Origin: Asterias rubens
Taxonomy: Eukaryota
NCBI RefSeq assembly: GCF_902459465.1
Contig: NC_047075.1
Coordinates: 2,604,001 to 2,668,000, forward strand
Length of the DNA: 64,000 bases
Direction: 5' to 3'
Both the position numbers and the translations under genes were made by a program. Positions 4,673 to 24,680 of the stretch are shown piece by piece. Below the pieces are notes generated by a model, which ran no database searches, was not told where the DNA came from, and was given only the letters and a program-made list of their open reading frames with translations. Numbering within the stretch: position 1 is the first letter of the stretch; the number at the start of each line of letters is the position of its first letter.

Positions 4673-5605
4673 GGTCTTGGCCATGGTGCCTCTTAAGTTG
4701 TTTTCCACAGCTTCAAGGCTTCGCAATGGAAATGAAATGGAAATGGCCTTGCCCTTTCAAGATAAATGAGTTGGGGTGGTTCTGTAAAAAAAAAGCACGT
4801 TGGTTTCAACTCGACGTTTCGCTCAGTAAATCGTCTTCTAAAGGAAAAAAAAAGAAAAACGACGATCTGAAAAGTCATATTTGTTGAGAAATAAAGTAAT
4901 CACCCATTTTGGAGTTTATCGCTCAGTGAGCGTTTTATTAATTTTTATTTTTGCATCGATGTCATGCAAACTGTGTACTTGTAATCGGCTTTTCACTTTT
5001 TCTCGTGACCCAGATGGTCGATCGACCTCAAACCTCTACAGGTTTTTCAGTTAATGTATGGTGGATTACATAAAGTGCTTACACTGTCATTAGCAATTTT
5101 TTTTTTTTTTTTTTTGCAAAAAATACTGCTGTAATGTTCCTTTAAATGAACTACAGGTTGTTAGGAGAAGGATAACAACTAAAATGGCTGCCGTGAGAAA
5201 ACGGAAAGGACTTCTGAGAAGCTGTCTTCTAATATGTTTGATGACCAGTCTTCCGATTAGGGGTGGGTAACAAAAAATATAACTTAAAGACAGTGGACAC
5301 CTTTGGTAATTATCAAAGACCAAATAATGCCAGAGATTTGCTATTTATTTATAGTTTCTTCTTATTTCACAAGTTTGTTATTATGTGCATAATATGTTTA
5401 TATCTACAAGTTAGAAGACTGGCCTTTGACAATTACCAATAGTGTCCGGGTATTTAAATAATCGGTAGGTCTCATGTCTTATGAAAGGCACCATTGTTTT
5501 CTACGCTTTTGTCACCAAATAACTATTCGCCATACAACTTGTCGCCAAGCTTATTATTATTATTTGGTGCTGTTTTGTTTTAATATCTCGTTGCTGTGGA
5601 AACGG

Positions 5606-5623
5606 TGACGTCATTGGGTGGAG
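5606..5623 (+). promoter_or_regulatory. CRE (TGACGTCA) plus GT/GC box (GGGTGGAG) upstream of FReD1
   Basis: The motif pair lies 184 nt before the ATG. The same pair, at the same spacing, lies upstream of FReD2 (21285, TGACGTAA) and FReD3 (23195). Confidence 0.45.
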
Positions 5624-5789
5624 CTGAATGCATGCAATTGCTTGCGAGCAAAGATTTGCTTCATTTGATCTGGGAGACTATAGTAACAACAAACTGCAGT
5701 ATCGGGACAGTTTTCCACCTACAGTTAATCGGGACAAAAACATTTTCTCTCAGGTACATTTTCGAAAAGAAAATCTTCAAACATTCATC

Positions 5790-6773
5790 ATGGAAGCTAC
5801 GATCATTATAATATTGGCTCTTAGTTTGATGGTACAAATCGACCAGAGTGCAAGTCAACAACGGTTCATCGAAACACTCTACTTGGCTGAAAACCGAGCC
5901 TTACTTAATCATGGGTTTCAGTGGAAGACTGTATCTTCTCCTGTGATCTGTGGGCGAGACTGCTCTATGGATCCACAGTGTGTATCATTTAACTATCACA
6001 TCATAAGAGGTATCTGTGTGTTGAATGATGCCAGCAGAGCTCACAGCCCTGATGACTTTGTTGCGAGTGAAGGGAGTGCCTACTATGATAACAACTTGGA
6101 CACTTCTTCATTTTCACTACCCAGCACTAGTAGTTGTCTGGAGTTGTATCAAGCTGGTTACCGCATTAATGGTTTATACACCATCTTTCCTACAAGTCTG
6201 ACCACCAGTGGGTTACAGGTTTACTGTGATATGAAGACAGATGGAGGCGGCTGGATCGTGTTCCAGAGGAGACAAGATGGCTCTGTTGACTTTTATCGTA
6301 ACTGGGCCGAATACCAATCTGGGTTTGGTGATCTGCAGAGTGAGTTCTGGTTGGGGAATGATATCATGCGTGACCTTACTGGGTCAGGTCAATGGCGACT
6401 CAGAGTAGATATGGAAGATTGGGAGTCCAACACAGCTTGGGCTTCTTATGATGAGTTCAGTGTTACCGGTAACAAGTACACTCTCCAGGTTGGTTCATAT
6501 GATGCTCAGAGCACAGCAGGTGATGCAATGACATATCATAATGGATTACCATTCACAACAAAGGATCAGGATAATGATGCAAGGTCTGGTTACAATTGTG
6601 CCGAGCGTTATGAAGGTGCCTGGTGGTTTAATGACTGCCTTCATTCTCATCTGAACGGTAAATATTATCCAAGCCAAGATGTCAGCCCATCACGGGGAAT
6701 ACAATGGTACGAGTGGAAAGGAGCTCACGACTCCCTGAAGAAATGCAGCATGAAAATACGGCAAGTTTTGTAA
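5790..6773 (+). CDS. Intronless secreted PAN/apple + fibrinogen C-terminal domain protein (FReD1), 327 aa
   Basis: Signal peptide MEATIIIILALSLMVQIDQSA. PAN-like C-x3-C-x5-C...C (CGRDCSMDPQCVSFNY...C). FBG motifs VYCDM-x-TDGGGWIVFQRR-x-DGSVDF, GFGDLQSEFWLGN, FTTKDQDND, WWFNDC and SMKIR. Confidence 0.93.
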   Translation: MEATIIIILALSLMVQIDQSASQQRFIETLYLAENRALLNHGFQWKTVSSPVICGRDCSMDPQCVSFNYHIIRGICVLNDASRAHSPDDFVASEGSAYYDNNLDTSSFSLPSTSSCLELYQAGYRINGLYTIFPTSLTTSGLQVYCDMKTDGGGWIVFQRRQDGSVDFYRNWAEYQSGFGDLQSEFWLGNDIMRDLTGSGQWRLRVDMEDWESNTAWASYDEFSVTGNKYTLQVGSYDAQSTAGDAMTYHNGLPFTTKDQDNDARSGYNCAERYEGAWWFNDCLHSHLNGKYYPSQDVSPSRGIQWYEWKGAHDSLKKCSMKIRQVL

Positions 6774-6798
6774 CTATCAACCCATTGACCGGGGACAG

Positions 6799-6883
6799 GG
6801 AATAAAATGGAATGACTGGAGTGGGGATTATTAATTACTCCCTCAAATAATGCAGCATGAAAATACGACAACTTAAACTCTAA
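6799..6883 (+). pseudogene. Orphan, degenerate FBG C-terminal fragment downstream of FReD1
   Basis: Reads GIKWNDWSGDY*..YSLK*CSMKIRQLKL*, homologous to the last ~28 codons of FReD1/2. Confidence 0.75.
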
Positions 6884-9029
6884 CCTTGGGATTACGGGAC
6901 AAGAATGATTGACTTGTTGAACTGGAAAGGTTATTTTTGCTGCAGCTGAGAAATGCCCCAAGATTCTCCTTACGAACACAGAGATCAACAACACATCTAC
7001 GGTATTATTTTTAATCGCGTTTAACATTATCAATGGGTTTGTTTTTAAGGAAGAAAAAAATGTTATCAAAAACTGCAACAAAAACAAATTCATATAAAGT
7101 CAACGTGGAAAGATGAACTTAAAAATCAAAAGGCTAGAATGTCTTTGACAAAGGAACTGCCAACTGTTTGTTGGTGGTAAAAGGGACAATACGAAGACTT
7201 TCACAGCGGTATATTTTTATAACCATCATTCTAAAGTTGATTTCCATTCAGTATACAAACATCGGTAATATAAATTCATTAAATATTAGATATGGACTGT
7301 TTGACTATTGCAGTGGGATAAAAAGTTATCACATATTGTAGAATGTTCTTCACTGTAATTTTGACATTTTATGATCATAGTAGCATAGTGTTGTGATTTG
7401 TGTTGTGAAGCAAACTTTAAGCAAAATGTGCCTTTAAGCAAATGGTCCAATGAAGTAGTATTTAAAATTGTCAAGTGTCGATAAATGTATTTTTGTAAAC
7501 GTTTTTTTAACAAAACATTGCAGTGTCTTTGCCGTGCGATCACACGGCAACGACACTGCCGGTTTTAAACGGCCGTTTAAGAACTCGTCGCTACCCTTTT
7601 ATTCCCTTCGTTATAATACAAAACATATCTGTGCGTACAAATATTGTGTAATTGTTTAGGTGCACAACAGCCGTTGGTAGTAGAGTGGTTCACAGTGGTA
7701 CTTCAGTGCTGTTATTGGTAGGACTTATAGAATTTAATTATTTACATTTTAAAACATTAATGTTAACTATTGTGGAATGTTGAGAAGAGAATTAGAAAAA
7801 CAGATTGTTGTAGTCCCACATACATTGCATGAAAATACTGATTGTTAAAGCGCCTTGAGTGTCAATGAGTGGCGCATATGAGCACTATAAGAAACCAATA
7901 TTATCATAAGAAATGATAAGAAACCGTCAACAAGATTTCCTCGATTGTTTTAGCGCTCTGTTAGAAAAAAACAACACCTGCAAACGACGCTTCATTGAGC
8001 ACTCCCTTTACACGGTCATTCTAATTCAATAGCAATTCTAACTGTGTACACATTCAACGGAATAAATAACTCAACGCTAACCCAATGAAACACGTATCCG
8101 GATCCCGCTAATAATCAAATCAGTCGAGATACGTCTGCACTTTTCCCGCCAAAATTGCTTCATTATGGCGGGAACTGATCCCCATCGCAGAGTGTCAGAT
8201 GTTTATACTGTACAATAGGGGGCGCTCTAATTTGTTGCAGGAGGCGTGTCCAACGGCACTTCCGTATCTTGATATGATAATTGACTCAGCAAATTTTCAG
8301 TTAATTTGCGAGAACGCATAGATAAAAACGTTGCCTGAACTTCAGACGTACGGGCAACTAAACATTTTCAAAATAAATGCAATGCTATCATCGTTTGTTT
8401 ACCGATTCTTATCGTGCATTAAATTTGTTTCCCTTTAAACATAACAACAATTTTCCGTAAACTTGAATTCTCACAATCGTTTTGATTTACTAGAATTCCC
8501 CCCCTAACAAAACCTTCACCCATTGTGCAGAAGTGACCCCCCCCCCCCCAATCTTGCTCAATGTGTGCTCTGACCTGTGTCCCTAAAATCCTACAAGGAA
8601 TTCCTGAAATTTCCAGAACACAATAGACAAACAATAGGAGGCGAGGGTTGTACATCAAGCCCATAGATGCACCAAATACAGGTTGAAAGCAACACTACGT
8701 GTGTCAAGCAGGAAATGTCCTCTGGACATGTCGTGTAAATCATGTATGTGGACACTATTTTTAAAAGGGAATGAAAGCACAGCCTACGACCTGTCATGTT
8801 GAGAATTGATCATGAAGGAATTGTCGGAGAGAGAACTGACAGAGGTGAGTTTCTTTTTTTTCTCGTGTTGTTTTGAGGCTTGCTTTTTGTGTTCTTCAAT
8901 AAGCTTGCCATCTTGTGTCTTGGTCCCTGTAGTATCCATGTGTGTATTCATGTACGACCCTGATAGCAACCAGCCTATTTTTTTTATTTACACGTTCGGT
9001 TGTGCTGTGGCATTGGGTTTCATACGTCG

Positions 9030-9640
9030 GGGAAAAGTTTCCTTATGGCGCCACCACTTTTTCTTCTTCTTCTTCCTCTTCCTTATAAAGTGCAGCCTTC
9101 AAAATGGTTGAAGATGTACGCACTGCGTGTGAGCGCATGTGTTGACTTAGGCAACAGGAATTTGTGTCAGGTGCAGGTAGAATTCGATATGAAATAATAC
9201 CTAATTTACCTCAATGAGACATCCCTTTTTGTAAAAATGAGTAAACAAAAGTGGTGGCGCCATACGGAAAGTAAGGCGTAATAAAACTGGGTCCAGAAAT
9301 AAGATACATTCAAGAAACAATGTTCTCCTTTGTTTTTGATCGTGAGCCTCAATTTAATTATATCTTTCGCGCGTTCGTGATTTATTTACACAACATTTAC
9401 AATAGATAATGCTAAATTGTTTATCAGTAGAATTTTAAACAACTTTTAGACTAACCCTGTTGGTGCTTTACATTTCTACTTACAATGTTTATGAGTGAAC
9501 ATTCATTATGGAAAAGTTTCCGTATGGCGCCACCACTTTTTCATTTGATATGAAATAATATAGTATCTAATTTACGTCATTGAGATATCCTTTTCGGTAA
9601 AAATGAGTGAAAAGGTGGTGGCGCCATACGGAAAGTTATC
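9030..9640. mobile_element. Two MITE copies with TTTCC(G/T)TATGGCGCCACCAC / GTGGTGGCGCCATACGGAAAG TIRs
   Basis: Inverted repeat pairs at about 9030-9275 and 9511-9640 with shared internal sequence. Confidence 0.65.
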
Positions 9641-10049
9641 CGGGGTGGTTATTCATTGGTGATTATATCTTCATTAGCAATCAATTTGTTGTTGAGGCAG
9701 TCAAAAAATTACTTCGTACTACTTTAGATCTTATAGATGAGGTATAATAAGAAAAGAGAATTTTCTGTTGATAAAAAAGAGGGCGCTGTTTGACTTTATT
9801 TGCAGGTGTGTTATGTTATGCTGTTTGCCCCCCTCCCCCCGACCTCGCTGTTTGTCAGCCAAAACTAAATACATCCAATAATTGGTTTGTTGTTTTCTGT
9901 CCAACGAATTATACACTATTGTTTAACAATAGTGTAACATTCTTAACCCTCTGCCTGTGTTGAGTTCCCATTATGGGGAACAAAATCTCCGGGAGACAAA
10001 CTCAGAAACGACTTCACTTACAGATTGGGGTCAATGGTGCTTATTATAG

Positions 10050-11632
10050 TTACTCACAATATTGATAAAACACCCAGTCCCCGTGGTATGTGCTCCAAGT
10101 AGAGATACCAACATGCACAAAATCAGGCGTTGCATTTAGATGTGCGGTGACGTCAGCCAGCGTGAAACCCTGACTCTGTCCCCCTTTGCCCACCGTGATA
10201 GCGCCCCCTATCCACTCGATCCAGAAGGGCCGATATTCATCACTAGAGACCAGTCCATCTTCATTGTGTGAGAACAGGAAAGTGGATGACGGGCATCCGT
10301 CATAGCATACCCCAATCCCGGCATTCATTTCCCCTGGACCGGATGATCCTACTCCTGAAAATAGTAATAAATGGAAGAGTCATTAAAGGCAGTGGACACT
10401 ATTAGTAATTGCTCAAAAGAATTATTAGCATAAAACCTTTCTTGGTTACGAGTAATGGGGAGAGGTTGATGGTATAAAACATTGTGAAAACGGCTCCCTC
10501 TAAGGTGCCATAGTTTTCGAGAAAGAAGTAATTTTTCCACGAATTTGAATTCAAGACCTCAGATTAAGAACTTGAGGTCTCGAAATCAACCATCTAAACG
10601 CACACAACTTCGTGTGACAATGATGTTTTTTTCTTTCATTATTATCTCGCAAGTTCGATCATCGATTGAGCTCAAATTTGCACAGGTTTGTTATTTTATA
10701 CATATGTTGAGATACACCAAGTGAGAAGGCTAGTCTTTGACAATTACCAATAGTGTCCACTGCCTTTAAACTATCAACAGCTCTCCATTGCTCATCACCA
10801 AGTAAGTATGTTAAGCTAAAACATTATTTTGAGTAATTACAAATAGTGTCCTGTGCCTTTAAGAAACCACTAGTATTAGTATTATCATACACATTTTTGG
10901 CACTTTTTTCTCACCTTATATCTATAAAGGCAAAACCGGATTGTTGAGTCCTGGCCAATCCGAGTGAAAGCACAACATGGCCGGCCGCTTTCACTTTGAA
11001 GTTAATCCGGAACTTGAAGGAGGTGCTCAGAGGCTTCAGGATGAATCTAAAACTGTTTGATTTCGGCTCGGAGGCGAAGGAGCAAGCTAAAGATATTAAA
11101 GGTAAAATTAAATAATATCAATACGATGACGAGTTGTCCTAACCTTTTAGCACCAAGTCTACTTTCTATGTATAATGTATCGACGTGTCTTAATAATCTG
11201 TATCACCAAGTCGCCTGTTGTTCACAAAAATATGACAACTCCTGGAGCTCTTTAGCATAAATCAAAATTAAAACTTACGTGTAGTTCGGCAGGCGTTTCT
11301 AAAAGGCTCGAAGGTGCCGTCTACCAACGATAAAACACATTAAATGGTACCAATATTAAAACGGAGAATGCACACAAAAGTATGACAATCAATAGAGTTT
11401 ACAACTCCCAGATCTGTACCAGCCATTCAAACAAAAACTTACGTGTCGTTCGGCAAGCGTTTCTGAAAGCCTCAACGGTTTGATCACCCAAAGACGCGGG
11501 GTCCTGCCGGTCTACGGTCCGGACGAGTACACCGCACGAGGCTGCCGTAACCCACAGCACTGCAAAGTACACGGCGACACACAAAGTTAAAGCAATGGGT
11601 TTGGTAACCATGTAACCGTTTGTAGTAACCAT
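10050..11632 (-). CDS. Secreted Methyltransf_FA (FAMeT-like) domain protein, copy 2 (4 exons; carries a +1 frameshift as assembled)
   Basis: Exons 11632-11443, 11320-11279, 11086-10915 (172 nt versus 171 in copy 1) and 10354-10050. Exon 4 encodes GLVSSDEYRPFWIEWIGGAITVGKGG...VHVGISTWSTYHGDWVF, the FWIxW-xx-GxIxVG and HVGxST-x4-GDW motifs of the Methyltransf_FA domain. The protein would be 235 aa if the extra base were removed. Confidence 0.75.
10387..10765. mobile_element. Kolobok-like MITE family 1 in intron 3 of FAMeT-like copy 2
   Basis: Both TIRs present, with TTAA at 10383-10386 and 10766-10769. Confidence 0.8.
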
Positions 11633-12904
11633 GATGCTTTAAACTCGTAAGTTAACCCTGCGGTGCCCAAAATCAAAAAGTGGGTTATTTGAGGCGCTCT
11701 CTGTCGCTGCAAAACCAACTTCTTGGTGTCGTCGATATGTTGCACTGATTGAGTATGTAGCTCTATTGCGTTCGACCATGAAGTTATTAGCTCCAGGATT
11801 CCACTCAATAAAGTTACCTTGTTGTTGAATTTGTTCCCAATTATCAGTTTGTTAAAGGCGCAGTCGCCATATCATGTTGACTCTATAAACCGGCTCTTTT
11901 CAGAGCCAGCACTACTCACAAGCTTTCAGACAAAAAAAAAACAATAATTGTTTGTATACGCACAATCCTTGATAGTACCTTTAAGTCAACAACCTCGTAT
12001 TAATTACTTGTTGTCCTCCAGCCCTTGCTCTACGAGGATCCAAGCTGATCGATGAAACTTGAGGACACTGCGTACGAGGTTGACATTGTTTCATATACTT
12101 CCCTCTCTACATTTTAAGTCAATATTGCCAAGGCATATTTGAATATAATTTGTTCAGTAAAGACTGTCGACCTTTTCTGTCGTATACACCGTGTGCAACA
12201 GTAATATAGAAACGATGATTACCATTCGACGAAATGGGTATCAGACTAATTCTAATGTTGGCCATTGGGGGAAAGAAACAAATTCCAAAAATTCAAAAAC
12301 CAAGGCAAACAAACAAACAAACAAACATTCCGAACCCTTCTGGTGGCCAATAGGGGGAGGTAATATACAAACAAAAGCAAACAAACAGACAAGCAAAGTG
12401 TCTGAGGCCTATGGGCAGCCATTGGGGGACATACGTAAACAAAAGCAAATAAACAAAGCAAAGGAACTAAACAGGTATAAAGTATTGCCATTGAATTTAC
12501 CAAAGCGTATCTTAGATATCAACTTTTATTTGGATGTTCCTTTTTTTTCTCCAAACACATGATATTGTGAGCGTTTCCTCCGACCGCTTATAGGGCGTCT
12601 AACTGGGCAACAACAGTAGCTCAAAGGTTTCCATTTTTAGTTAATTAAGCGTTGTTGTTGTTTGTTAGTTGTTTTGTTCGTATTCGTACGTCCTCTGTTT
12701 GTCCGTTTATCTTGTCTCTGTCTGTCTACGGGCTGATTACTGCAAGCCTCGGCTTATCAAACCGGCCTCCATACTGTTTCTTTTCTTTGTACTACACACT
12801 ACTATGTTTGCTATTACAATGTATACGCTTCTCTTAATATGCTAGCATGACGTCACCATTCTATATACCCAAAACGAGGCCATCGGCGCAGCCACATGCA
12901 ACTA

Positions 12905-13100
12905 GGGCACTTTTCGAAACCACGGCTTCGGCTCCAGATTCGGCTCCAGACCCCGTAACTCCAGATTCGGCTCAAGATTCGGCCCAGGCTAGCTTGGCCC
13001 GCGGTTGTTTTAACAACTGCGCGTGCTTTGCGTACACGTTCAGGGCTTCAGACGAGAAAAAGGAGCCTGAAACCGAAGCCGTGGTTTCGAAAAGGGCATA
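12905..13100. mobile_element. MITE with GGGCACTTTTCGAAACCACGGCTTCGG TIRs and internal CCAGATTCGGCT repeats
   Basis: Inverted match CCGAAGCCGTGGTTTCGAAAAGGGC at about 13074-13098. A half copy lies at about 27900-27930. Confidence 0.65.
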
Positions 13101-13971
13101 TGATATCGAGTGGCTGGTATTGGTGGTGGCGTGGTGTGCGCCGATGGCGTCATTTTGGGTTTGAAAGATCATCATGCATGAATATTAAGAGAGGCAATGC
13201 ACTCTGTAATGCTGTGTTTTTGAAAGAATAGAAATAATGTTGAATTGAATTGAAAGTACATTCACGGTTCACTTGTCAATGACAGCACTAATGACGATGA
13301 AACAATTAACCTATTAGCCATATTATAACGACAATCATTTTGTAAACCGAAAATATAGTTTTCTTTCATCATGATTAAAAGCACTGGACCTTATGGTAAT
13401 TACTCAAAATAGTTGTTAGCCAAAAGAACTTACATTGTATTGAGCATTGGAGAGGCTTTGATAGTAAAAACTATTGAATTGAACTGAAAGTACTATTGAA
13501 TTGAATTGAAAGTACGTTCACGGTTCACTTGTCAATGACAGCGCTAATGACGATAAAAAATAATAAACCTATTAGCCATATAACGACAATCATTTTGTAA
13601 ACCGAAAATACAGTTTTCTTTCATCATGATTAAAGACACTGGACCTTATTGGAAATTACTCAAATTAGTTGTTAGCCAAAAGAACTTACATTGTATTGAG
13701 CATTGGAGAGGCTTTGATAGTAAAAAAAAAAAAAAAAAAAAAAAAAACATCGTGAGAAACGGCTTTCCTGTAGTTCTTGTTGAGATAGAGGTAATTTCTC
13801 ACTCAAATAATAAAATACTTCAGCTGAAGCCTTTTAAGCACACAAAGTTGTGCAACACGGATGTTTCTTCTTGCAACTTCGGTGACCAATTGAGCCATAC
13901 TTTTGTTGGGATACACCAAGAAAGAACACTGGTCTTTGACGGATTTAACCAAACGTGTCCGGTGCCTTTAA

Positions 13972-14356
13972 AGGGTCTATGTAACTTTTGTAGGACAAAA
14001 AACACAATATCCACAGATTTACACTAAACTTACACAGTTTGAAGATAATGATAGTAGAAAGCTTCCCTGAAAACATTACGTGCTGAGGTGCTTTAGTTTT
14101 GGGGAAATTAGTAAAACAATGCCATGAAAATAATTTTCATCTCAAAATAGTTGAAAATAATTTTCATCTCATGAGACGAAAATTATTTTAATCATTTTTA
14201 CAAACGTATTTTCATGACATTGTTTTACTCATTTCTCAAAAACTACAGCACCTCAGTAAGTAATATTTGAAGGGAAGCTTTCCACTCTCATTATCTTCAA
14301 ACCCTGTAAGTTTAATGTAAATCTATGGACATTTTGAAAAGGTACCCAAAAATCCT
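13972..14356. mobile_element. Kolobok-like MITE family 3 (TTAA-AGGGTCTATGTAAC...AATCCT-TTAA)
   Basis: TTAA flanks. Copies at about 23965-24330 (inverted) and 62763-63140. Confidence 0.7.
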
Positions 14357-17010
14357 TTAACTGTCAAATACTAATGACTATAGCAATTAATCAATGTGGG
14401 CAGACCGCAGCAATACTTTAATGATTAAAATGAATAATTCAGCTCTTGCCAACACGACGCTCATTTTGTAAACACAAAAATTAATCTTCTTTCATCATGA
14501 TGATACCGCCAAACACTAATGACTTGGAGTTTAAAGGCACTGGACACTATTGGTAATTGTCAAATACCAGTATTCTCACGTAACTGCATAAGATAACAAA
14601 CCTGTGAACATTTGGGTTCAATCGGTTATCGAAGTTGCGAGAAAATGATGAAAGAAAAAACACCCTTTTTGGACGAATTTGTGTGCTTTCAGATAGGAAT
14701 AAAAGACTTCTAGCTAGAAAGTCTTTCATTATTTTAGAGGGAGTCGTTTGCCACAATGTTTTATACTATCAACAGCTCTCCAATGCTCGTTACCAAGTCA
14801 GTTTTTAAGTTGTTTTAAGTAATTACCAAACGTGTACCTTCCCTTTAAAGACACTGAACACTAATTGTAATTGTCAAAGACCAGTATTCTCACGTGGTGT
14901 ATCCCAATTGCATAAAATAACTAACCTGTGAACATTTTGGCTCAATCGGTTATCGAATTTGCGATCATCTTTGTATGCTTTTAGATGTATAATAAAAGGC
15001 TTCAGCTGAGAAGTATTTTATTTGAGTGAGAAATTACTTTTCTCAAAAATTACGTTACTTCAGAGTGAGCCGTTCCTCACAATGTTTTATGTTATAAACA
15101 GCTCTCCATTGCTCGTTACCAAGTAAGCTTTTATGCTAACAATTATTTTGAGTAATAACCAATAGTATCCATAATCGGTATAATCATGTTGATGCCTGGT
15201 AAAAGGCTTTAAAAAGTATTAAAATAATCCTTGTTAAAAGTCATCACCATTAAAAAATACCTGTACCCATTTCCGAGAAGCACTAATTGTTCCCTGGGGA
15301 ATCATAATATCCAACTCCCTGTTATTAAAAGTCATTTTACTGTCAAATTTCATGCCTGGAATTACATGGTAGGCATGACCTATGTTGCCCCGGGCCCAAT
15401 TTCATAGCGCTGCTTAGCGGCCGATTTTGTGCTTACTGTGCAATTTCTATTTCATAGCACTGCTAACCGTAAGCACACGAAAGGCATGCTAACCTTCCGG
15501 TGCTCACCGCACGAAAATGACGTCACAATGCAAATCTACGGTAAACACGCAATATGGCCGCCCAATTTTTCTGCTAACCTGTGGAATACGCTAAGGCTTA
15601 AGCATTTTTTTCTGCTACAGTAAGCACGCAAATTTGCTTACCGTTAAGCAGCGCTATGAAATTGGGCCCTGAGAGCTGCTTTAGCAAAAACATTTGCTTA
15701 AGCAAAAAATTAATTGCTTGTAAAATCAAATTACCGGCCAAGACTCCACTCAATTGTTATGCTAAGTAAACAACAGCTAAATACTAGTCATAAGCAATGT
15801 ATATGGCATGAAATGTTGGCCAGTAACATGTGTAAAATAAGCGAGCTATTTTATTGCTTAAGCATACTTTTTGCTTAAGCAGCTCTATGAAATTGTGCCC
15901 AGGTCTTGGCCATGGTGCCTCTTAAGTAGTTTTCCACAGCTTCAAGACTTCGCAATGGAAATGAAATGGAAATGGCCTTGCCCTTTCAACAAAGATGAAA
16001 GGCCAGATGTCATATAATTTGAATAATCATGAAAAAGACGAAAGCTATAAGTAAATTACAAGCTTTTGTAACAATGTGGGAAAATAGCTTCTTTAAGTGC
16101 ATGGCTAATAGTTAATGTGCATTGTTATAGGCATAACATGCGACGGGCCATTGTTTGACCGTTTAAAATCTAACATATTAATAAAATTCAAATGTTGATG
16201 TTGTTTGTAGTTGCTGGGCACCTCTGAAAAAAACAGTGTTTCACTAAGAGGTCTCCCCAGGGTTAATAAGGAATAAATACAAATATATTTTGAAATTTTA
16301 ACCACGATTCTATCAATTTTAATACTGCAATGTTGTAAGGTTTTTGAACACTACACTCGGGTCAAAATTTACCCGGATTTGGGTCCCAGCGGGCCAGACC
16401 CATTTCTGGGTTGGTTTGACCCTGAATCCGTGTCAATGTGACCCGGACTCATTGTTACCAGAAATTTGGTTAAAAGCGTGGATTTTGACTCGGATTTCAG
16501 GACACGTTGACACAGATTCCGGGTCAAACTGACCCTTAAATGGGTCTGGCCCCCCTGGGACCCAAATCTGGGTTAATTGGCGAGGCATTTCACTTTTGTG
16601 CTGAGATTTACAAATTCTATGCTTGTGAAGCTTCTACGTGTAAAATAAATGACATACATCTTCATTCAGAGTGAGTAGGGATTCATGTAATAGCCAAATA
16701 CTTGATCTACAAAAGGTATCAAAGTCATATTATTAAGGGCATTGGGGATGGACACTATTGGTATACATTCAAAGAAAATAACTGTTAGCATACAAACTTA
16801 CTTGGTAACGAGCAATGGAGAGCTGTATAAAACATTGTTAGAAGCGACTCCCTCTAAAGTAACGTAGTTTCTGAGGAAGGGGGTAATTTCTCTTTCACAT
16901 ATTAAACAGACTTCAGGCCTGAAGCCTATTATTAGGCTTTTGAAAGCACAGATGTGCAACAAGGGTGTGTTTTCTTTCATTCATTTTTTGCAACTTCGGG
17001 GACCAATTAA

Positions 17011-17368
17011 AGACACTGGACACTGTTGGTAATTGTCAAATACCAGTCTTCTCACTTAGTGTATCTCAACATAAGCATAAATAAACAAACCTGTGAAAAA
17101 TTGAGCTCAATTGGTCGTCGAGGTTGCGAGATAAATGAAAGATAAAAACAAACCTGTCACACGACGTTATGGTTTTCACATGCTTGATTTTGAGACCTCA
17201 AATTCTAAATCTGAGGTCTTGAAATCAAATTCGTGGAAAATTATTTCTTTCTGGAAAACTATGTCACTTCATGTTTTATACCATCAACCTCTCCCTATTA
17301 TTGTTACCAAGTAAGGTTTTATGCTAATAATTATTTTGAGTAATTACCAATAATAGTGTCTACTGCCT
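17011..17368. mobile_element. Kolobok-like MITE family 1 (inverted)
   Basis: TTAA-AGACACTGGACAC ... GTGTCTACTGCCT-TTAA. Confidence 0.75.
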
Positions 17369-17949
17369 TTAAGTTCAAATTTTCACAGACCTTTTATTTT
17401 TAAGCATAATGTTGAGACACACTAAGTGAGAACTGGGCCCAATTTCAAAGAGGTGCTTAAGCAAAAGATACTGCTTAAAACTCCAGTTATGAGCAGGATA
17501 CCAATCACAAATTGTACATGTGACAATGTGTGCTTGTGCAGCTCTATGAAATTTGGCCGTGGTCTTTGACAATATCCAGAACTGTAAAGTGTCTTTAAGA
17601 AACACACACACATTCTTGTAAATGAAGACGGACGGTCCCAAACCAATCGATATGTTGTTTGTGTTTAGCTGTGCCGTTGTCAGAGTGCCCTGTTGCAGTG
17701 CCGTTAATCTCAGATCGATCCAAAATGGCCGATCAGCGAGAGTATTGACTGGCGCTTATAAGCCAAATACTCTAAGCACAACATTGCATTGTGACCAACT
17801 GCAGTCAACGATGACCGATTGAGAACATTATACATTATTGCCGGTATTACAATGTTACAGTGGTAACCATAAACCTTAAACCAATGCATTAACACGAGCT
17901 CCAAACGCTTCGAAACTTTTTTATTTTTATTTTTTATGAACAAGCCATC

Positions 17950-18300
17950 TCATCTTACTTATCTGTCTAGCCTATTTCACTCCACTGCTGGAGGAAAGCC
18001 TCTTCACAAATTATCCATCTCACTCTATCCTGCGCTGTTTGTTGCAAAGCAATGCCCCTGTATGTACTTAGTTTATCTCTCCACCTTCTATTTCGTCTCC
18101 CTCTTTTTCTTGTCCAGTTTCTTGGAGTCCAATTGGTTGTTTTGCGTGCCCCCCTGTTGTCATACCTCCTTGCTAGGTGACCTGCCCATCTCCACTTCTT
18201 TGAGTTAATGGTCTTATTAATTTCATGCACTCTTGATTTCTTTCTAAGGTCTTGTTTATTATGCTTATCAAACACATCTGTGAAAGCCGTCACCAATTGG
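17950..18300 (-). mobile_element. RTE-clade LINE 3' fragment
   Basis: Translation KKWRWAGHLARRYDNRG...WTPRNWTRKRGRRNRRWRD...AQDRVRW...EEAFLQQW is the typical RTE ORF C-terminus. Confidence 0.85.
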
Positions 18301-21300
18301 GAATAATTCTTAACTAGGCAAAGTGAAAGAGTGTGGCACCCGGTGCACGAAGTGTCTGGCTTTTAGCACCAGCCTCAAAACGTTACGCAACCAAGCCCAG
18401 TCTTAACTATCGATATATCTCAAATGTTTTGTCAAGTACCCTTCTTGTTTCACTTTATACACAGCTTGGGGTGTATTTTGACGCTGGACCAAACCCTTGG
18501 ATATCGTGCGGAATCTTAAAGAAACATTACAGAATTGGTAAGCAACAAAACTCGTTTAAGATCACAGATTTACATGGAACTAACAGGGTCAAATGATGTT
18601 TTAGTTTAGTTCATTTGGTTTGACTCTTTTCAGCGCTTTGATCTCAATGAAAAGACGCTTTACAAATGCACTGTTGTAATGTATGTATTTCTGTAAGTAT
18701 ATTTGATGAGAAATTTTATTTTTAATAAAACTAATGTCCCGTTTGAAGTTTACAGCCCAGTGAGCGTTTTAATCATTTGTTTTGAATCGATGTCATGCAA
18801 TGGGTTTTTCACTATTTTCTCGTGACCTAGATGGCTGATCGATCTCAAACTTCTCCTGGTGGTTTGTCAGTTTATGTAAACGGTGGATTACATAAAGTAC
18901 TTACACTGTCAGCAACTTTTTTTTTTAGCAAGCAAATTCTGTAATGTTCCTTTAAATGAACTACAGGTTGTTAGGAGAAGGATAACAACTACAATGGCTG
19001 TCGGGAGAAAACGGAAGGGACTTTTGAGAATCTGTCTTCTCATGTGTTTGATGATCAGTCTTCCGATTGGGGGTGAGTAACAAAAAATATAACTTAAAGG
19101 CACTGCCGTCAATTTCACAAAACTCTTCCTGACTTAGGATTAATCTTATGACTTAGGACGAGTCCCAACCCTGCAGTGTAGCATGCAGACCTTAAGATTA
19201 ATCCTAAGTTAGGCTAACTCGGGATAAGACGAGTCCTAACTCTTTATGAAATCGACGGCTGTTGTATCCCCACTTATACATTAAATAACAAACATGTGAA
19301 AATTAGGGCTCAATTGGTCCACGAAGTTACAAAAGAATAATGAAAGAAAAAACACCCTTGTTGCATTACTTTGTGCTTTCAGATGCATAATAAAAAACTT
19401 CAACTGAATAATTTTATTATTTGAGTGGAAAAAGACATCTTTCTCAAATACTACGTCACTTCAGAGGGAGCTGTTAGTCACAGTGTCCGGTGCATTTAAA
19501 GGCATGCACTGGACACTATTGGTAACACTCAAAATAATTGTTAGCATAACACCATACTTTGTAATGGGTAGTGGAGAGCTGTTTGTAGTATAAAACATTG
19601 TGAGAAACGACTCCCACTGAAGTAACGTAGTTTTTACGAAAGAAGTGATTTTACACGAATTTGATTTCGAGAACTCAGGTTTAGAATTTGAGGTCTCAAA
19701 ATCAAGCATCTGAAAGCACACAACTTTAAGACACATTGTCATAAATTTAAAGGCAGGGTCATACTTAACGTATTTTTTTTAGAGAGGTCATTACTCACTC
19801 ACATGTTAAAAGACTTCAGGCCTGAAGCCTTTTTAGGCATCTCAAAGCACACACATTGTGCAACAAGGGTGTTTTTTTATTATTCTCATTTAAATTAGTC
19901 AACATTTTCACAGATTTGTTACTTTATGCCTATGTTGGGGTACACCAAGTGAGAATACTTGTCTTTGACATTTACCAAAGGTGTCCAGTGCATTTAAACC
20001 TTTGTCGTGCAAGGAGTTTTTTGGGTAAGCCATTTTTGAGGCAACCGTTTGCACTACTTAGAGTAGCATTGCGAAGTCAATTGGCAATTGTTGTAACAGT
20101 GTCTTTACTTAAAAGTAATGTATACCTTTGGTATTTGGAACCAGTCGACTGTTTTAATCCTATATAAATGTACGGAACAAAGTCAACCTGCGTTCGAAAG
20201 TTGGTCGCGTTTTCGAGATATGTCAACGCAAGAAGAAAAACCCAGAAATAATTAATCATGAAATAATTTAGCTCTTGCCAACTACCACACGATCAATTTG
20301 TAAATACACAAGTGCTGTTATGTAACCATAGTGATACTGTCGAATACTAATTCCTTTGGCGATTAATCAGTTTGAGCATTTTGATGCCGGGTAAAAGGCT
20401 TCCAAATCTATTAAAGGAACATTAAAAAAAAAAAAAAAAATGAATATTATTAATATAACATAATTTGTTAAAAAAAACAAAAATCGTCTAAGATCACAGA
20501 TTAACATCGGTCTAATGATGATGATAGAAATATTTCTGTCTGAAATGTCAAATTTGTTGAGAAATAAATAAAAACAATTTCCCATTTGGAGTTTATCACT
20601 CAGTGAGCGTTTTATTAAATTTTGGTTAATCGATGTCGTGCAAAATGTGTAATCGGTTTTTCACTATTTTCTCGTGACCCGCAGGGCTGATCAATCTCAA
20701 ACTTATACAGGTTTGTTTATGTACATGGTGGATTACATGAAGTGCTTACACAGCCAGCAACTGTTTTATTAGCAACAACCAATTCGTAATGTTCCTTTAA
20801 TTTCATCCTAATGAAATAATCATCACCACAACAATTATTGGTAGCCGGTTGACGAGAGGCACTTAATGTTCCCTGGGGACATCTCGCTTCTGAACATGAA
20901 ATTGTATGCTAATCATTGCCAATATTAGCAACGGTTCACCAAAATCATCCTAGCTTAGGATTAATTTTATGACTTGGGATGAGTAAAGTTCCCTATCCGA
21001 CGACGTAGGACGTAGACTTGTGGACAAGTCGTTAAATCGGCCCCACGCGCTGAGATAGTAGTCTCGCGAGATCACTGCTCTCGCGCGAACTGATGGCTCC
21101 TCGATTTCGACTCTTAATGAGCCAACACTCACCCTAAGAGATTTACTATTTATTTATAGTTTCTTCTTATTTCACAAGTTTGTTATTATATGCATAATAT
21201 GTTTATATCTACAAGTTAGAAGACTGGCCTTATTATTTTTATTTGGTGCTGTTTTGTTTTAATATCTCGTTGCTGTGGAAACGGTGACGTAATTGGGTGG

Positions 21301-21468
21301 AGCTGAATGCATGCAATTGTTTGCGAACAAAGATTTGGTTCATTTGATCTGGGAGACTATAGTAACAACAAACTGCAGTATCGGGACAGTTTTCCACCTA
21401 CAGTTAATGGGGACAAAAACATTTTCTCTCTGGTACATTTTCGAAAAGAAAATCTTCAAACATTCATC

Positions 21469-22437
21469 ATGGAAGTTACGATCATTATAATATTGGCTCT
21501 TAGTTTGATGGTACAAATCGACCAGAGTGCAAGTCAACGACGGTTTATCGAAACGTTCTACTTGGCCGAAAACCGAGCCTTACTGAATCATGGGTTTCAG
21601 TGGAAGACTGTATCTACTCCTGTGATCTGTGGGCGAGACTGCTCTATGGATCCACAGTGTGCATCATTCAACTATCATACAAATAATGTTTGTATGTTAA
21701 ATAATGCCAGCAGAGCTCACAACCCTGATGACTTTGTTGCGATTCAAGGGAGTGCCTACTATGATGACAACTTGGACACTTCTTCGTTTTCACTACCCAG
21801 CACTAGAAGTTGTTTGGAGTTGTATCAAGCTGATTACCGCATCAATGGTTTATACACCATCTTTCCTACAAGTCTGACCACCAGTGGGTTACAGGTTTAC
21901 TGTGATATGGAGACAGATGGAGGCGGCTGGATCGTGTTCCAGAGGAGACAAAATGGCTCTGTCAACTTTGACCGTACCTGGGCTGAATACCAATCTGGGT
22001 TTGGTGATCTGCAGAATGAGTTCTGGTTAGGGAATGATATCCTGCGTGACCTTACTGGATCGGGTCAATGGCGACTCAGAGTAGATATGGAAGATTGGAA
22101 GTCCAATAAATCTTGGTCTTCTTATGGTGAGTTCAATGTTACAGGTGACAAGTACACTCTCCATGTTGGTTCATATGATGCTCAGAGTCCAGCAGGTGAC
22201 TCAATGGCATTTCATAATGGGCGTCAATTCAGTACAAAGGACAATGGCAATGCTCAAAACTGTGCGGTGAGATACAAGGGTGGCTGGTGGTATGCCAGTT
22301 GCTTTTATGCTAATCTGAACGGTGAATACTACCCGCATGGTTATGTGTCTGTTAGTCAGGGAATACAGTGGACACACTGGAGAGGACACTTCTACTCCCT
22401 CAAGAAATGCAGCATGAAAATACGGCAAGTAAAATAA
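21469..22437 (+). CDS. Intronless secreted PAN/apple + fibrinogen C-terminal domain protein (FReD2), 322 aa
   Basis: Paralogue of FReD1 with the same signal, PAN and FBG motifs. The 3' quarter is strongly diverged (FSTKDNGNAQNC, WWYASCFYANLNG). Confidence 0.93.
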   Translation: MEVTIIIILALSLMVQIDQSASQRRFIETFYLAENRALLNHGFQWKTVSTPVICGRDCSMDPQCASFNYHTNNVCMLNNASRAHNPDDFVAIQGSAYYDDNLDTSSFSLPSTRSCLELYQADYRINGLYTIFPTSLTTSGLQVYCDMETDGGGWIVFQRRQNGSVNFDRTWAEYQSGFGDLQNEFWLGNDILRDLTGSGQWRLRVDMEDWKSNKSWSSYGEFNVTGDKYTLHVGSYDAQSPAGDSMAFHNGRQFSTKDNGNAQNCAVRYKGGWWYASCFYANLNGEYYPHGYVSVSQGIQWTHWRGHFYSLKKCSMKIRQVK

Positions 22438-22489
22438 ACTCAAACTCTTACCCAGAGTTGGGCCATGGTTGGATTGAACAGAATGTTCC

Positions 22490-22695
22490 CGTGGCGTGTT
22501 GTGGCCGTTAGGGTTAGATCACCGGATTCAAGCTCGGGTACGACGTTTCTGATCAGCAGGATGTGGGTTCGAGTCCCGGTCATGACTCTCGTGTCCTTAA
22601 GCAAGCCACTTAACCAGTATTATTAACTCGTCCTTCGGAGGGGACGTTAAGCTGTTGGTCCCGTGCGTTGTGTGATGCACGTTAAATATCCCGGT
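22490..22695 (+). mobile_element. tRNA-derived SINE, 3'-truncated
   Basis: A-box-like GTGGCCGTTAGGG and B-box GGTTCGAGTCCC, followed by the non-tRNA body GTGTCCTTAAGCAAG-CACTTAACC. A partial copy lies at about 47500-47620. Confidence 0.75.
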
Positions 22696-23377
22696 AACCC
22701 ACATTTTCACAGGTTTGTTATTTTATGCAAATGTTGGGATAAACCAAGTGAAAACAAAGGTCTTTGACAACTAACTATCAAACAGGTCCAGTGCCTTTGA
22801 GATAGACAACCGGGACAAAACTAAAGTTGTTTTTACATGTTTTGTGGGTAGCTTCTGCGTTTTGGTATTATGGGTTTTTTTTTCATGTTGGCAGGGGTAG
22901 TTGAACATAAAAAGTGACAATAAAACCTGTTGACACATTAGTCCATAACAAATGATTTTCTAAAGCAGGGAACCGCGAAGATATTTTTCTCACAAATATA
23001 CTCTGTTGTATAGCAGTAATACGTTCTCGCACCTTTTGGCAATCATCAGATGTGTGTGGGTGGTTATAAATTAATCAGTAGGTTCCATGACTTACTGTTT
23101 TCTATGATTTTGTTAGCATGATCTGTCGCCAAGGTTATTACGTGGTCGGGTGGTTTTGCTGTGTTTTGCTAATATTTCATTGCTGTGGGAATGATGACGT
23201 CAGTGGGTGGAGCTTATTGCATTAAAAGTGTTGGCGACCAAAGATTTGGTTCATTTGATCCGTCTGTGTCAAGGAGTAGCTGTCAGTGTCAGGACAACTT
23301 TCAACCAACAGTAAAGAGGGAAAGAAAATTACAATTTTCTCTCTGATACTTGAAAATAGATTCCAGGAATATTCATC

Positions 23378-23766
23378 ATGGAAGTTATGATCACAATCTT
23401 GGTTCTGATTTTGGTGGTACAAATCTGCCAGAGTGCAAGTCAACAACGGTTCATCGAAACACTCTACTTGGCTGAAAACCGAGCCTTACTTAATCATGGG
23501 TTTCAGTGGAAGACTGTATCTTCTCCTGTGATCTGTGGGCGAGACTGCTCTATGGATCCACAGTGTGCATCATTCAACTATCACATCATAAGAGGTATTT
23601 GTGAGTTGAATAATGCCAGCAGAGCTCATAGCCCTGATGACTTTGTTGCGAGTCAAGGAGTCCACAGGGAGAGGTGACATATGGACTGGGAATACAATGG
23701 TTCAGCTGGAAAGGACATAAATACTCCCTGAAGAAATGCAGCATGAAAATACGGCAAGTTGTGTAA
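23378..23766 (+). pseudogene. FReD3: signal + PAN domain fused out of frame to the last 34 FBG codons (about 600-nt internal deletion)
   Basis: Codons 1-94 match the FReD1 N-terminus. From 23662 a shifted frame reads PQGEVTYGLGIQWFSWKGHKYSLKKCSMKIRQVV*. As assembled, the ORF stops at 23677 (99 aa). Confidence 0.8.
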
Positions 23767-23790
23767 CTATCAACCCATTGACCAGGGACA

Positions 23791-23871
23791 CTAATAAAGT
23801 GGAATGACTGGAGTGGGGATTATTACTCCCTCAAGAAATGTAGCATGAAAATACGACAACTCGAACTCTAA
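23791..23871 (+). pseudogene. Orphan, stop-free FBG C-terminal fragment downstream of FReD3
   Basis: Reads LIKWNDWSGDYYSLKKCSMKIRQLEL*, preceded by an in-frame TGA at 23779. Confidence 0.75.
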
Positions 23872-24680
23872 CCTAGGGTTCATGGGACATGAATTGACTG
23901 ACTTGTTGAACTGGAAAGGTTATTGATTGTGCTGCTGAAAGAAATAACCGGAGACTCTCCTTAAAGGATTTGGGTGCTTTTTGTAACACAAAACACATCG
24001 CCATAGATTTACATTAAACTTACACCATTTGAAGATAGTGATAATATAAAGCTAACCTTGAAGAATTAGATGCTGAGGTGCTGTAGTTTTTGAGAAATTA
24101 GTAAAACAATATCATGAAAATACGTTTTTACATGCTAAATAATTTTCGTCTCTTGATCAGTGAGGCGAAAATTATTTTCATGATATTGTTTTACTCATTT
24201 CTCAAAAACTACAGCATCTCAGCAACTGATATTTTCAGGGAAGCTTTCTGCTATCATTATCTTCAAACTGTGTAAGCTTGGTATAAATCTGTGGACATGG
24301 GGTTTTAGTCCAACAAAAGTACATAGATCAACAACTCATCAACGGTGGGATTTTTAATTGCGTTTAACATTATCAATGTTTAAAAAATAAAATAAAAAAA
24401 AACTGCACCAAAAACAACCTCCTATATAAAGTGAACGTGAAAAACTTAAAAATCAAAAGGCTAAAATGTCTTTGACAAAGGAACTGCCAACTGTTTGTTG
24501 GTGGTAAAAGGGACAATACGAAAACCTTCACAGTGGTATATTTTTAAAATCATCATTCTAAAGTTGATTTTCATTCAGTATACGAACGTCGGAAATATAA
24601 AATCATTAGATAAAGACTGTTTTATTATCATTGTAGAATGTTCTTCACTAGAATTTGTCATTTGACATTTTATGATCATA

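Follow-up and report, generated by a model that had tools for sequence, protein, structure and literature searches.

Why do two lectin-like genes from one locus of the starfish Asterias rubens agree closely over most of their length and diverge abruptly in the subdomain predicted to bind ligand? The question is raised by a stretch of 64,000 nucleotides (G000:C15:2604001-2668000 of the 417.6-Mb assembly; hereafter the window, to whose first letter all positions given without a contig refer). It holds two paralogous genes, F1 (5790-6773) and F2 (21469-22437), which lie on the forward strand, as do their flanks and parts and the broken copy F3 described below. Each is a single uninterrupted open reading frame (ORF), of 327 amino acids in F1 and 322 in F2, counted from the methionine of the signal peptide. 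Both genes are intronless and encode a PAN_1 domain followed by a Fibrinogen_C domain, the fibrinogen-related domain (FReD). A first-pass annotation, made from the sequence, had attributed their difference to diversifying selection or gene conversion that changes specificity on a constant scaffold. Our analysis suggests that the F1/F2 contrast probably reflects mosaic ancestry through recombination between paralogues, with family-wide selection on the ligand pocket superimposed on it.

F1 and F2 differ in the P subdomain

Amino acid identity between F1 and F2 is 86% over residues 1-240 (207/240) and 56% over residues 241-327 (49/87, or 59% of the 83 aligned positions), and the two parts differ significantly (Fisher p = 4e-8). 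Nucleotide identity is 97.1% over the 240 nt before the ATG, 92.6% over coding nucleotides 1-720 and 67.5% over the rest of the coding sequence. Homology ends at the stop codon, and the 3' flanks are unrelated. These values bear out the first-pass annotation, which had estimated identities of about 85% and 55% by hand and had recognized the high similarity of the 5' flanks. The flanks are probable 5' untranslated regions and lie at 5550-5789 in F1 and 21229-21468 in F2. The scaffold of F1 (5790-6509) comprises the signal peptide (residues 1-22), the PAN/Apple domain (23-105) and the A and B subdomains of the FReD (106-240) and is supported by the Pfam matches, and the P subdomain (residues 241-327 and the stop codon) occupies 6510-6773. 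The corresponding parts of F2 are the scaffold, residues 1-239 (21469-22185), and the P subdomain, residues 240-322 and the stop codon (22186-22437).

The calcium loop within the P subdomain reads KDQDNDARSGYNC in F1 (KDQDND..., 6561-6599) and KDNGNAQNC in F2 (22237-22263). The F2 loop is 4 amino acids shorter, and both calcium-ligand aspartates are gone from it in the alignment; the first-pass annotation had already noticed the shorter loop and its missing acidic residues. The pocket motif pairs described earlier (WWFNDCLHSH/WWYASCFYAN and QWYEWKGAHD/QWTHWRGHFY) are all present in F1 and F2.

Probable mosaic origin of the F1/F2 contrast

F1 and F2 are members of a large family. A six-frame search of the genome gave at least 126 matches to F1, about 80 of which are full-length and consist of a single ORF without stops, as counted from the match table; counts from this search are lower bounds. 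Paralogue trees, the pairwise homoplasy index (PHI) test and codon models were computed on 27 of the about 80 intact paralogues.

Silent sites of F1 and F2 diverge in step with replacement sites. By the Nei-Gojobori method, the proportions of synonymous (pS) and non-synonymous (pN) differences between F1 and F2 are 0.127 and 0.060 in codons 1-240, and 0.566 and 0.268 in codons 241-327. Silent divergence goes up 4.5-fold and pN/pS is 0.47 on both sides of the boundary. Among codons for identical residues, 17/207 before residue 241 and 17/49 after it carry a silent difference (Fisher p = 1e-5), and silent sites have a change point at residue 241 (permutation p = 4e-4). For this pair, synonymous divergence rises equally in the 3' part, an outcome that the first-pass annotation had named as speaking against its own reading.

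The trees of the two parts are incongruent. The tree of the first 240 codons has the topology (F2,(F1,F0)) with support of 100/99, where F0 (L002; G000:C15:2589143-2590123) is a further copy upstream of the window that is 94% identical to F1. In the tree of the last 87 codons, F2 groups with the paralogues L024, L021 and L028 (93/98), and the approximately unbiased (AU) test rejects a clade of F0, F1 and F2 (delta lnL 31.4, p = 0.0018). The end branch of F2 in this tree is 0.18, which is the median, indicating that there was no F2-specific burst of change. The best amino acid match of the F2 P part is 66-67%, both in the genome and among public proteins, of which 5.8 billion were searched, A. 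amurensis included, and its best DNA match elsewhere in the assembly is 82% over 93 nt, in L024. F2 is thus chimeric. From the 5' flank through the first ~240 codons it belongs with the local F0/F1 lineage, and the last ~85 codons derive from a distant one of which no close relative survives.

Recombination is not confined to this boundary. The F2 scaffold is F0/F1-like overall but a patchwork. Its best match per 90-nt segment switches between F0/F1, L011, L004, L003 and others, with up to 99-100% identity. The PHI test was significant for the whole gene (z = -7.3, p <= 0.001), as it was for the N part (z = -7.4) and when restricted to third codon positions (z = -5.8). A mosaic pattern was also seen in the pairs F0/F1, L003/L011, L006/L008 and L014/L015. 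What the first-pass annotation took for a constant scaffold is made up of patches, and recombination keeps it similar; this does not come down to one old event. A run-length (GENECONV-like) pair test was set aside: its minimal p-values fell mostly in regions conserved in all members, so it mixes up conservation with conversion and was not relied on.

The younger pair F0/F1 shows a similar contrast on a smaller scale. Of the 34 nucleotide differences between these neighbours, for which an identity of 99.7% was also recorded, 2 fall in the first 240 codons and 32 lie within a 135-nt tract over the pocket, residues 270-314 (6597-6731). Silent differences are found in 3/27 identical-residue codons inside the tract and in 1/281 outside it (p = 0.002). 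One of them is a serine codon swap, AGC to TCA, which changes three nucleotides. Moreover, patches of the tract are common to distant paralogues: PQGEVSY occurs in F0, L003, L008 and L010, and PSQDV in F1 and L006. Judged from these sequences, patch replacement would fit the tract better than stepwise mutation. F0 also has the first of its P-domain disulfide cysteines replaced by Trp (NCA to NWA) and has gained a Cys beside the second (HCC), a change that is unique among the 27 paralogues.

Diversifying selection around the ligand pocket

The DIVERSIFYING selection question was addressed with our own codon-likelihood program, whose M0 log-likelihood (-4462.734) equals that of IQ-TREE on the same tree. 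For the P part, the likelihood ratio test (LRT) of M2a against M1a gave 137 (p = 2e-30), with 20% of sites at omega (dN/dS) 3.7. When the P part was cut into halves, each analysed on its own tree, the LRT was 53 and 72 and the same sites were found. The A/B subdomains and the PAN domain gave an LRT of 0.00 each, so the class with omega > 1 is confined to the P subdomain. The A/B subdomains and PAN domain are demonstrably recombinant and yet give no signal; recombination alone is therefore not its source.

Seventeen sites are selected with a posterior above 0.8: residues 248, 249, 265, 266, 268, 273, 274, 282, 285, 299-302, 307, 308, 312 and 313 in F1 numbering. Their relation to the pocket was mapped through an ungapped alignment with ficolin-2 and the residues known for FIBCD1, and is one of sequence equivalence only. 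According to published work (PMC3908420, PMC10825690), FIBCD1 has the calcium ligands Asp393 and Asp395 and a disulfide Cys401-Cys414; its S1 pocket is formed by Tyr405, His415, Tyr431, Ala432 and Trp443, and its extended site by His382, His396, Arg412 and Asn413. The F1 equivalents of the S1 pocket are residues 274, 284, 300, 301 and 312. The selected sites include 4/5 equivalents of the side chains of the FIBCD1/TL5A acetyl pocket, and five of the ten ligand-site equivalents are among the 17 (hypergeometric p = 0.02). Fifteen of the 17 lie at most 2 residues from the equivalent of a ligand-site residue or a calcium ligand. Four of the five S1 pocket columns are among the most variable of the family; Y405/H415/Y431/A432/W443 of FIBCD1 correspond to Y/L/P/S/A in F1 and Y/F/V/S/H in F2. 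F1 and F2 differ at 13/17 selected sites versus 25/70 other sites of the P part (p = 0.005).

These results indicate that, in the family, diversifying selection acts on ~17 codons, which lie around the S1 ligand pocket and in the calcium loop where it is variable. Of the two processes proposed by the first-pass annotation, recombination holds for the F1/F2 pair and selection on a duplicate does not, and selection holds family-wide. The parallel rise of silent change in this pair is accompanied, across the family, by the non-synonymous excess at pocket codons that selection predicts.

Proposed mechanism and alternative explanations

We propose that F1 and F2 come from a large family of intronless genes for secreted lectin-like proteins of PAN plus FReD architecture, in which ectopic recombination or gene conversion among paralogues keeps the 5' flank, the PAN domain and the A/B subdomains similar to one another and makes them patchworks. 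The P subdomain coalesces much deeper than this scaffold, and even the near-identical F0 and F1 differ almost only in the 135-nt pocket tract. The family may thereby offer a repertoire of recognition specificities that is encoded in the germline and built on one fold.

A further step, in which pocket patches are exchanged by templated, cassette-like conversion from broken copies and orphan 3'-end fragments, is a speculative extension to which we give little credence. Candidate templates may be the end cassettes of F1 and of the broken paralogue F3 downstream of F2, and an array of 85-bp P-core units on contig C26, both described below. If true, an echinoderm lectin family would have a counterpart, in the germline or even in somatic cells, of pseudogene-templated immunoglobulin diversification.

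Several results weigh against mosaic ancestry with superimposed selection. The PHI test inside the P part alone was not significant (z = +2.3). A DNA search of the assembly for donors of the P-cores of F0, F1 and F2 gave best matches of 89%, 85% and 82% over 93 nt, where the value for F1 excludes Fpsi, a broken near-copy at 99%. No donor was found, so the conversion events are inferred and not caught in the act. Pooled pN/pS over five close independent P-core pairs was 1.29, which does not exceed 1 significantly (p = 0.19). Recombination can inflate tests based on site models, and our fits held the M0 branch-length proportions fixed with one scale factor. The selected sites 265, 266 and 268 lie in an indel-prone loop, and the codon models represent the 27 sampled genes among the about 80 intact ones. 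Finally, none of three RNA runs has reads on the F2 coding sequence, and the function of F2 stays predicted.

This last point bears on the alternative that survives best, although we regard it as unlikely: F2 would be a non-functional chimera turning into a pseudogene, with a P part irrelevant to specificity. It agrees with the silence of F2 in the RNA runs, with its position next to a repeat and the broken F3, and with the loss of the calcium ligands. F1 has the equivalents D261 and D263 of D393/D395, and F2 has Gly and a deletion there. In the other 26 paralogues, D, N or E is found at the first calcium position in 25/26 and D at the second in 26/26, so that F2 alone of the 27 is without both aspartates. 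However, the 322-codon ORF of F2 is intact, and 30/32 framework positions of its P part are kept, which is within the family range of 0-5 deviations. A model of the F2 FReD alone (112 sequences) is confident, with a predicted local distance difference test (pLDDT) score of 95. The RNA runs, moreover, were of unrecorded tissue and condition.

The FReD model superimposes on L-ficolin, tenascin-R, FIBCD1 and TL5A with template modelling (TM) scores of 0.91-0.92; root-mean-square deviations from the acetyl-binding lectins are 1.3-1.6 A. The FReD of F1 matches solved FReDs with E down to 5e-65. F2 is thus predicted from the model to fold as a normal FReD but would have lost canonical calcium binding. 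A full-length F2 model, built with 48 close relatives, had a pLDDT of 58 and was discarded.

A local hypermutation hot spot, which would raise silent and replacement change in the P-core without exchange between paralogues, is much less probable. It would explain why pS and pN go up together, and it would sit well with the lack of close donors in the assembly and of a PHI signal within the P part. Across the family, synonymous diversity (piS) in the P part also exceeds that in A/B by a factor of ~1.5. A hot spot, however, does not make the P part of F2 group with specific paralogues at 93/98, does not place whole patches such as PQGEVSY and PSQDV in otherwise distant genes, and does not account for the three-nucleotide serine codon swap between F0 and F1.

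It is highly improbable that F2 is a plain duplicate of F1 in which positive selection on point mutations remodelled only the P subdomain. Amino acid divergence is indeed concentrated in the P part, and the family does have sites with omega > 1 there, but silent divergence goes up in step with replacement, and the silent-site change point contradicts a duplicate of this kind. The AU test rejects the clade of F0, F1 and F2 that it requires, and the P-part branch of F2 is not long.

That paralogues were collapsed or mis-joined by the assembly at the boundary of scaffold and P subdomain is scarcely credible even for a large and similar family in which run X7 has short-read contigs that connect paralogous sites, because a contig from X7 (not an RNA run, its kind not on record, and possibly not independent of the assembly sample) reproduces 22170-22430 with one difference, read depth is continuous over 21649-22611, and the mosaic pattern recurs in the four other pairs.

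Relation to known systems

Mosaic ancestry combined with pocket selection is a known evolutionary mode, here in a family for which no paper was located; our literature searches found none on a starfish PAN plus FReD family. Among proteins of known function, the closest comparison is with the acetyl-binding FReD lectins, namely tachylectin 5A, M-, L- and H-ficolin and FIBCD1. The F2 model has the same fold, and the F1 FReD matches these proteins at E 1e-50 to 1e-58 and has in common with them a disulfide of the Cys401-Cys414 type and a KDxDxD calcium loop. The variable sites of the starfish genes fall at places that bind ligand in these lectins (PMC3908420, PMC10825690). The N-terminal partner differs: it is PAN/Apple in starfish and a collagen-like, coiled-coil or membrane segment in the acetyl-binding lectins. 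In contrast to these lectins, F1 and F2 do not keep the pocket side chains, and F2 has lost the calcium ligands. Since the canonical acetyl-pocket side chains are missing, F1 and F2 are not placed in the acetyl-binding group and are, to judge from sequence, FReD lectin-like proteins outside it. Lacking a collagen region, they do not count as ficolins either: a Pfam profile search of F1 and F2 found PAN_1 and Fibrinogen_C only, and neither a collagen repeat nor an immunoglobulin superfamily (IgSF) domain.

The diversification of the fibrinogen-related proteins (FREPs) of the snail Biomphalaria glabrata was reportedly treated by Zhang et al. in 2004. FREPs combine IgSF and fibrinogen domains and are diversified by point mutation and gene conversion (PMC12074976, PMC4346834). 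Like the starfish genes, they form an expanded, clustered invertebrate FReD family whose diversity arises from recombination between members. Unlike FREPs, the starfish genes have no IgSF domain. Variation in the snail reportedly lies in the IgSF region and is partly somatic, whereas in starfish it appears to be germline, between paralogues and in the P subdomain.

A homogenised framework with selected binding sites is well known from the major histocompatibility complex (MHC), immunoglobulin V genes and the leucine-rich repeats (LRRs) of plant R genes. The starfish family resembles these in scaffold recombination, in a deeper-coalescing binding region and in omega > 1 only at contact residues. 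It differs from them in fold and lineage, and its genes are intronless and single-exon. The Sp185/333 (SpTransformer) genes of sea urchin are likewise a clustered and diversified echinoderm immune gene family, in which recombination and repeats are implicated (PMC5103432, PMC3091723). Their protein, however, is unrelated, and their diversity lies in element patterns and repeats and not in the residues of a lectin pocket.

The starfish family thus behaves like a germline recognition repertoire in which ~17 pocket positions are driven to differ. The 17 selected positions are concrete targets for glycan-array and structural work, and F2, without calcium ligands, is a natural test case. For other paralogue contrasts like that of F1 and F2, silent sites should be checked before the contrast is read as pair-specific selection.

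Gene models and further observations

Profile scores support the gene models. Fibrinogen_C (PF00147) scored 244.6 bits in F1 and 234.1 in F2 against a curated cut-off of 22, and PAN_1 (PF00024), with a curated cut-off of 21.4, scored 30.9, 27.8 and 30.4 bits in F1, F2 and F3, respectively. Public homologues are called "ficolin-like" and "ryncolin-like" by automatic annotation. A frameshifted near-copy of F1 lies upstream of the window at C15:2599308-2600447.

The regions 3' of the genes contain further family fragments. Just 3' of the F1 stop codon lies a degenerate second copy of the last ~30 codons of the gene (6793-6884). This second-copy cassette sits ~20 nt past the stop codon in F1 and in the F3 remnant and is missing from F2. 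The 3' flank of F2 (22438-23123) is unrelated to that of F1, and no paralogue flank matched it beyond a ~100-bp dispersed repeat at about 22698-22800. The broken paralogue F3 (23124-23865) follows. Internally deleted, it retains its 5' flank and a PAN domain (23378-23659) that runs directly into the last ~34 codons (23662-23763). A second end cassette lies behind these, at 23782-23865, and the 3' flank of F3 is like that of F1. Run X7 has contigs that connect 23652 with 21744 and 22209 with 23661; in these data, PAN sequence of F3 type is followed by an A domain with 96% similarity to that of F2. This may mean that the F3 deletion is polymorphic or that a different paralogue contributes.

Dispersed repeats at 22612-22825, 21007-21220 and 23896-24100 have high RNA read depth. 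These reads map partly and run into unlike sequence, which indicates that they come from other copies of the repeats. Between F1 and F2, a 92-aa ORF on the reverse strand (10050-10328) matches Pfam Methyltransf_FA, the farnesoic acid O-methyltransferase domain, with E = 8e-9 and probably represents an exon of a minus-strand gene.

Elsewhere in the genome, 9.6 tandem copies of an 85-bp unit (93% matches) form the array on contig C26 (L048:1369-2186; G000:C26:486869-487686). The unit derives from the FReD P-core (the NCA..GAWWF..C..HLNG stretch), its length is not a multiple of three, and the array lies ~2.4 kb upstream of the intact paralogue L013. Another architecture was also observed, with tandem FReDs in single ORFs of 1198 aa (C18:5017079-5019829) and 780 aa (C18:2885302-2886630).

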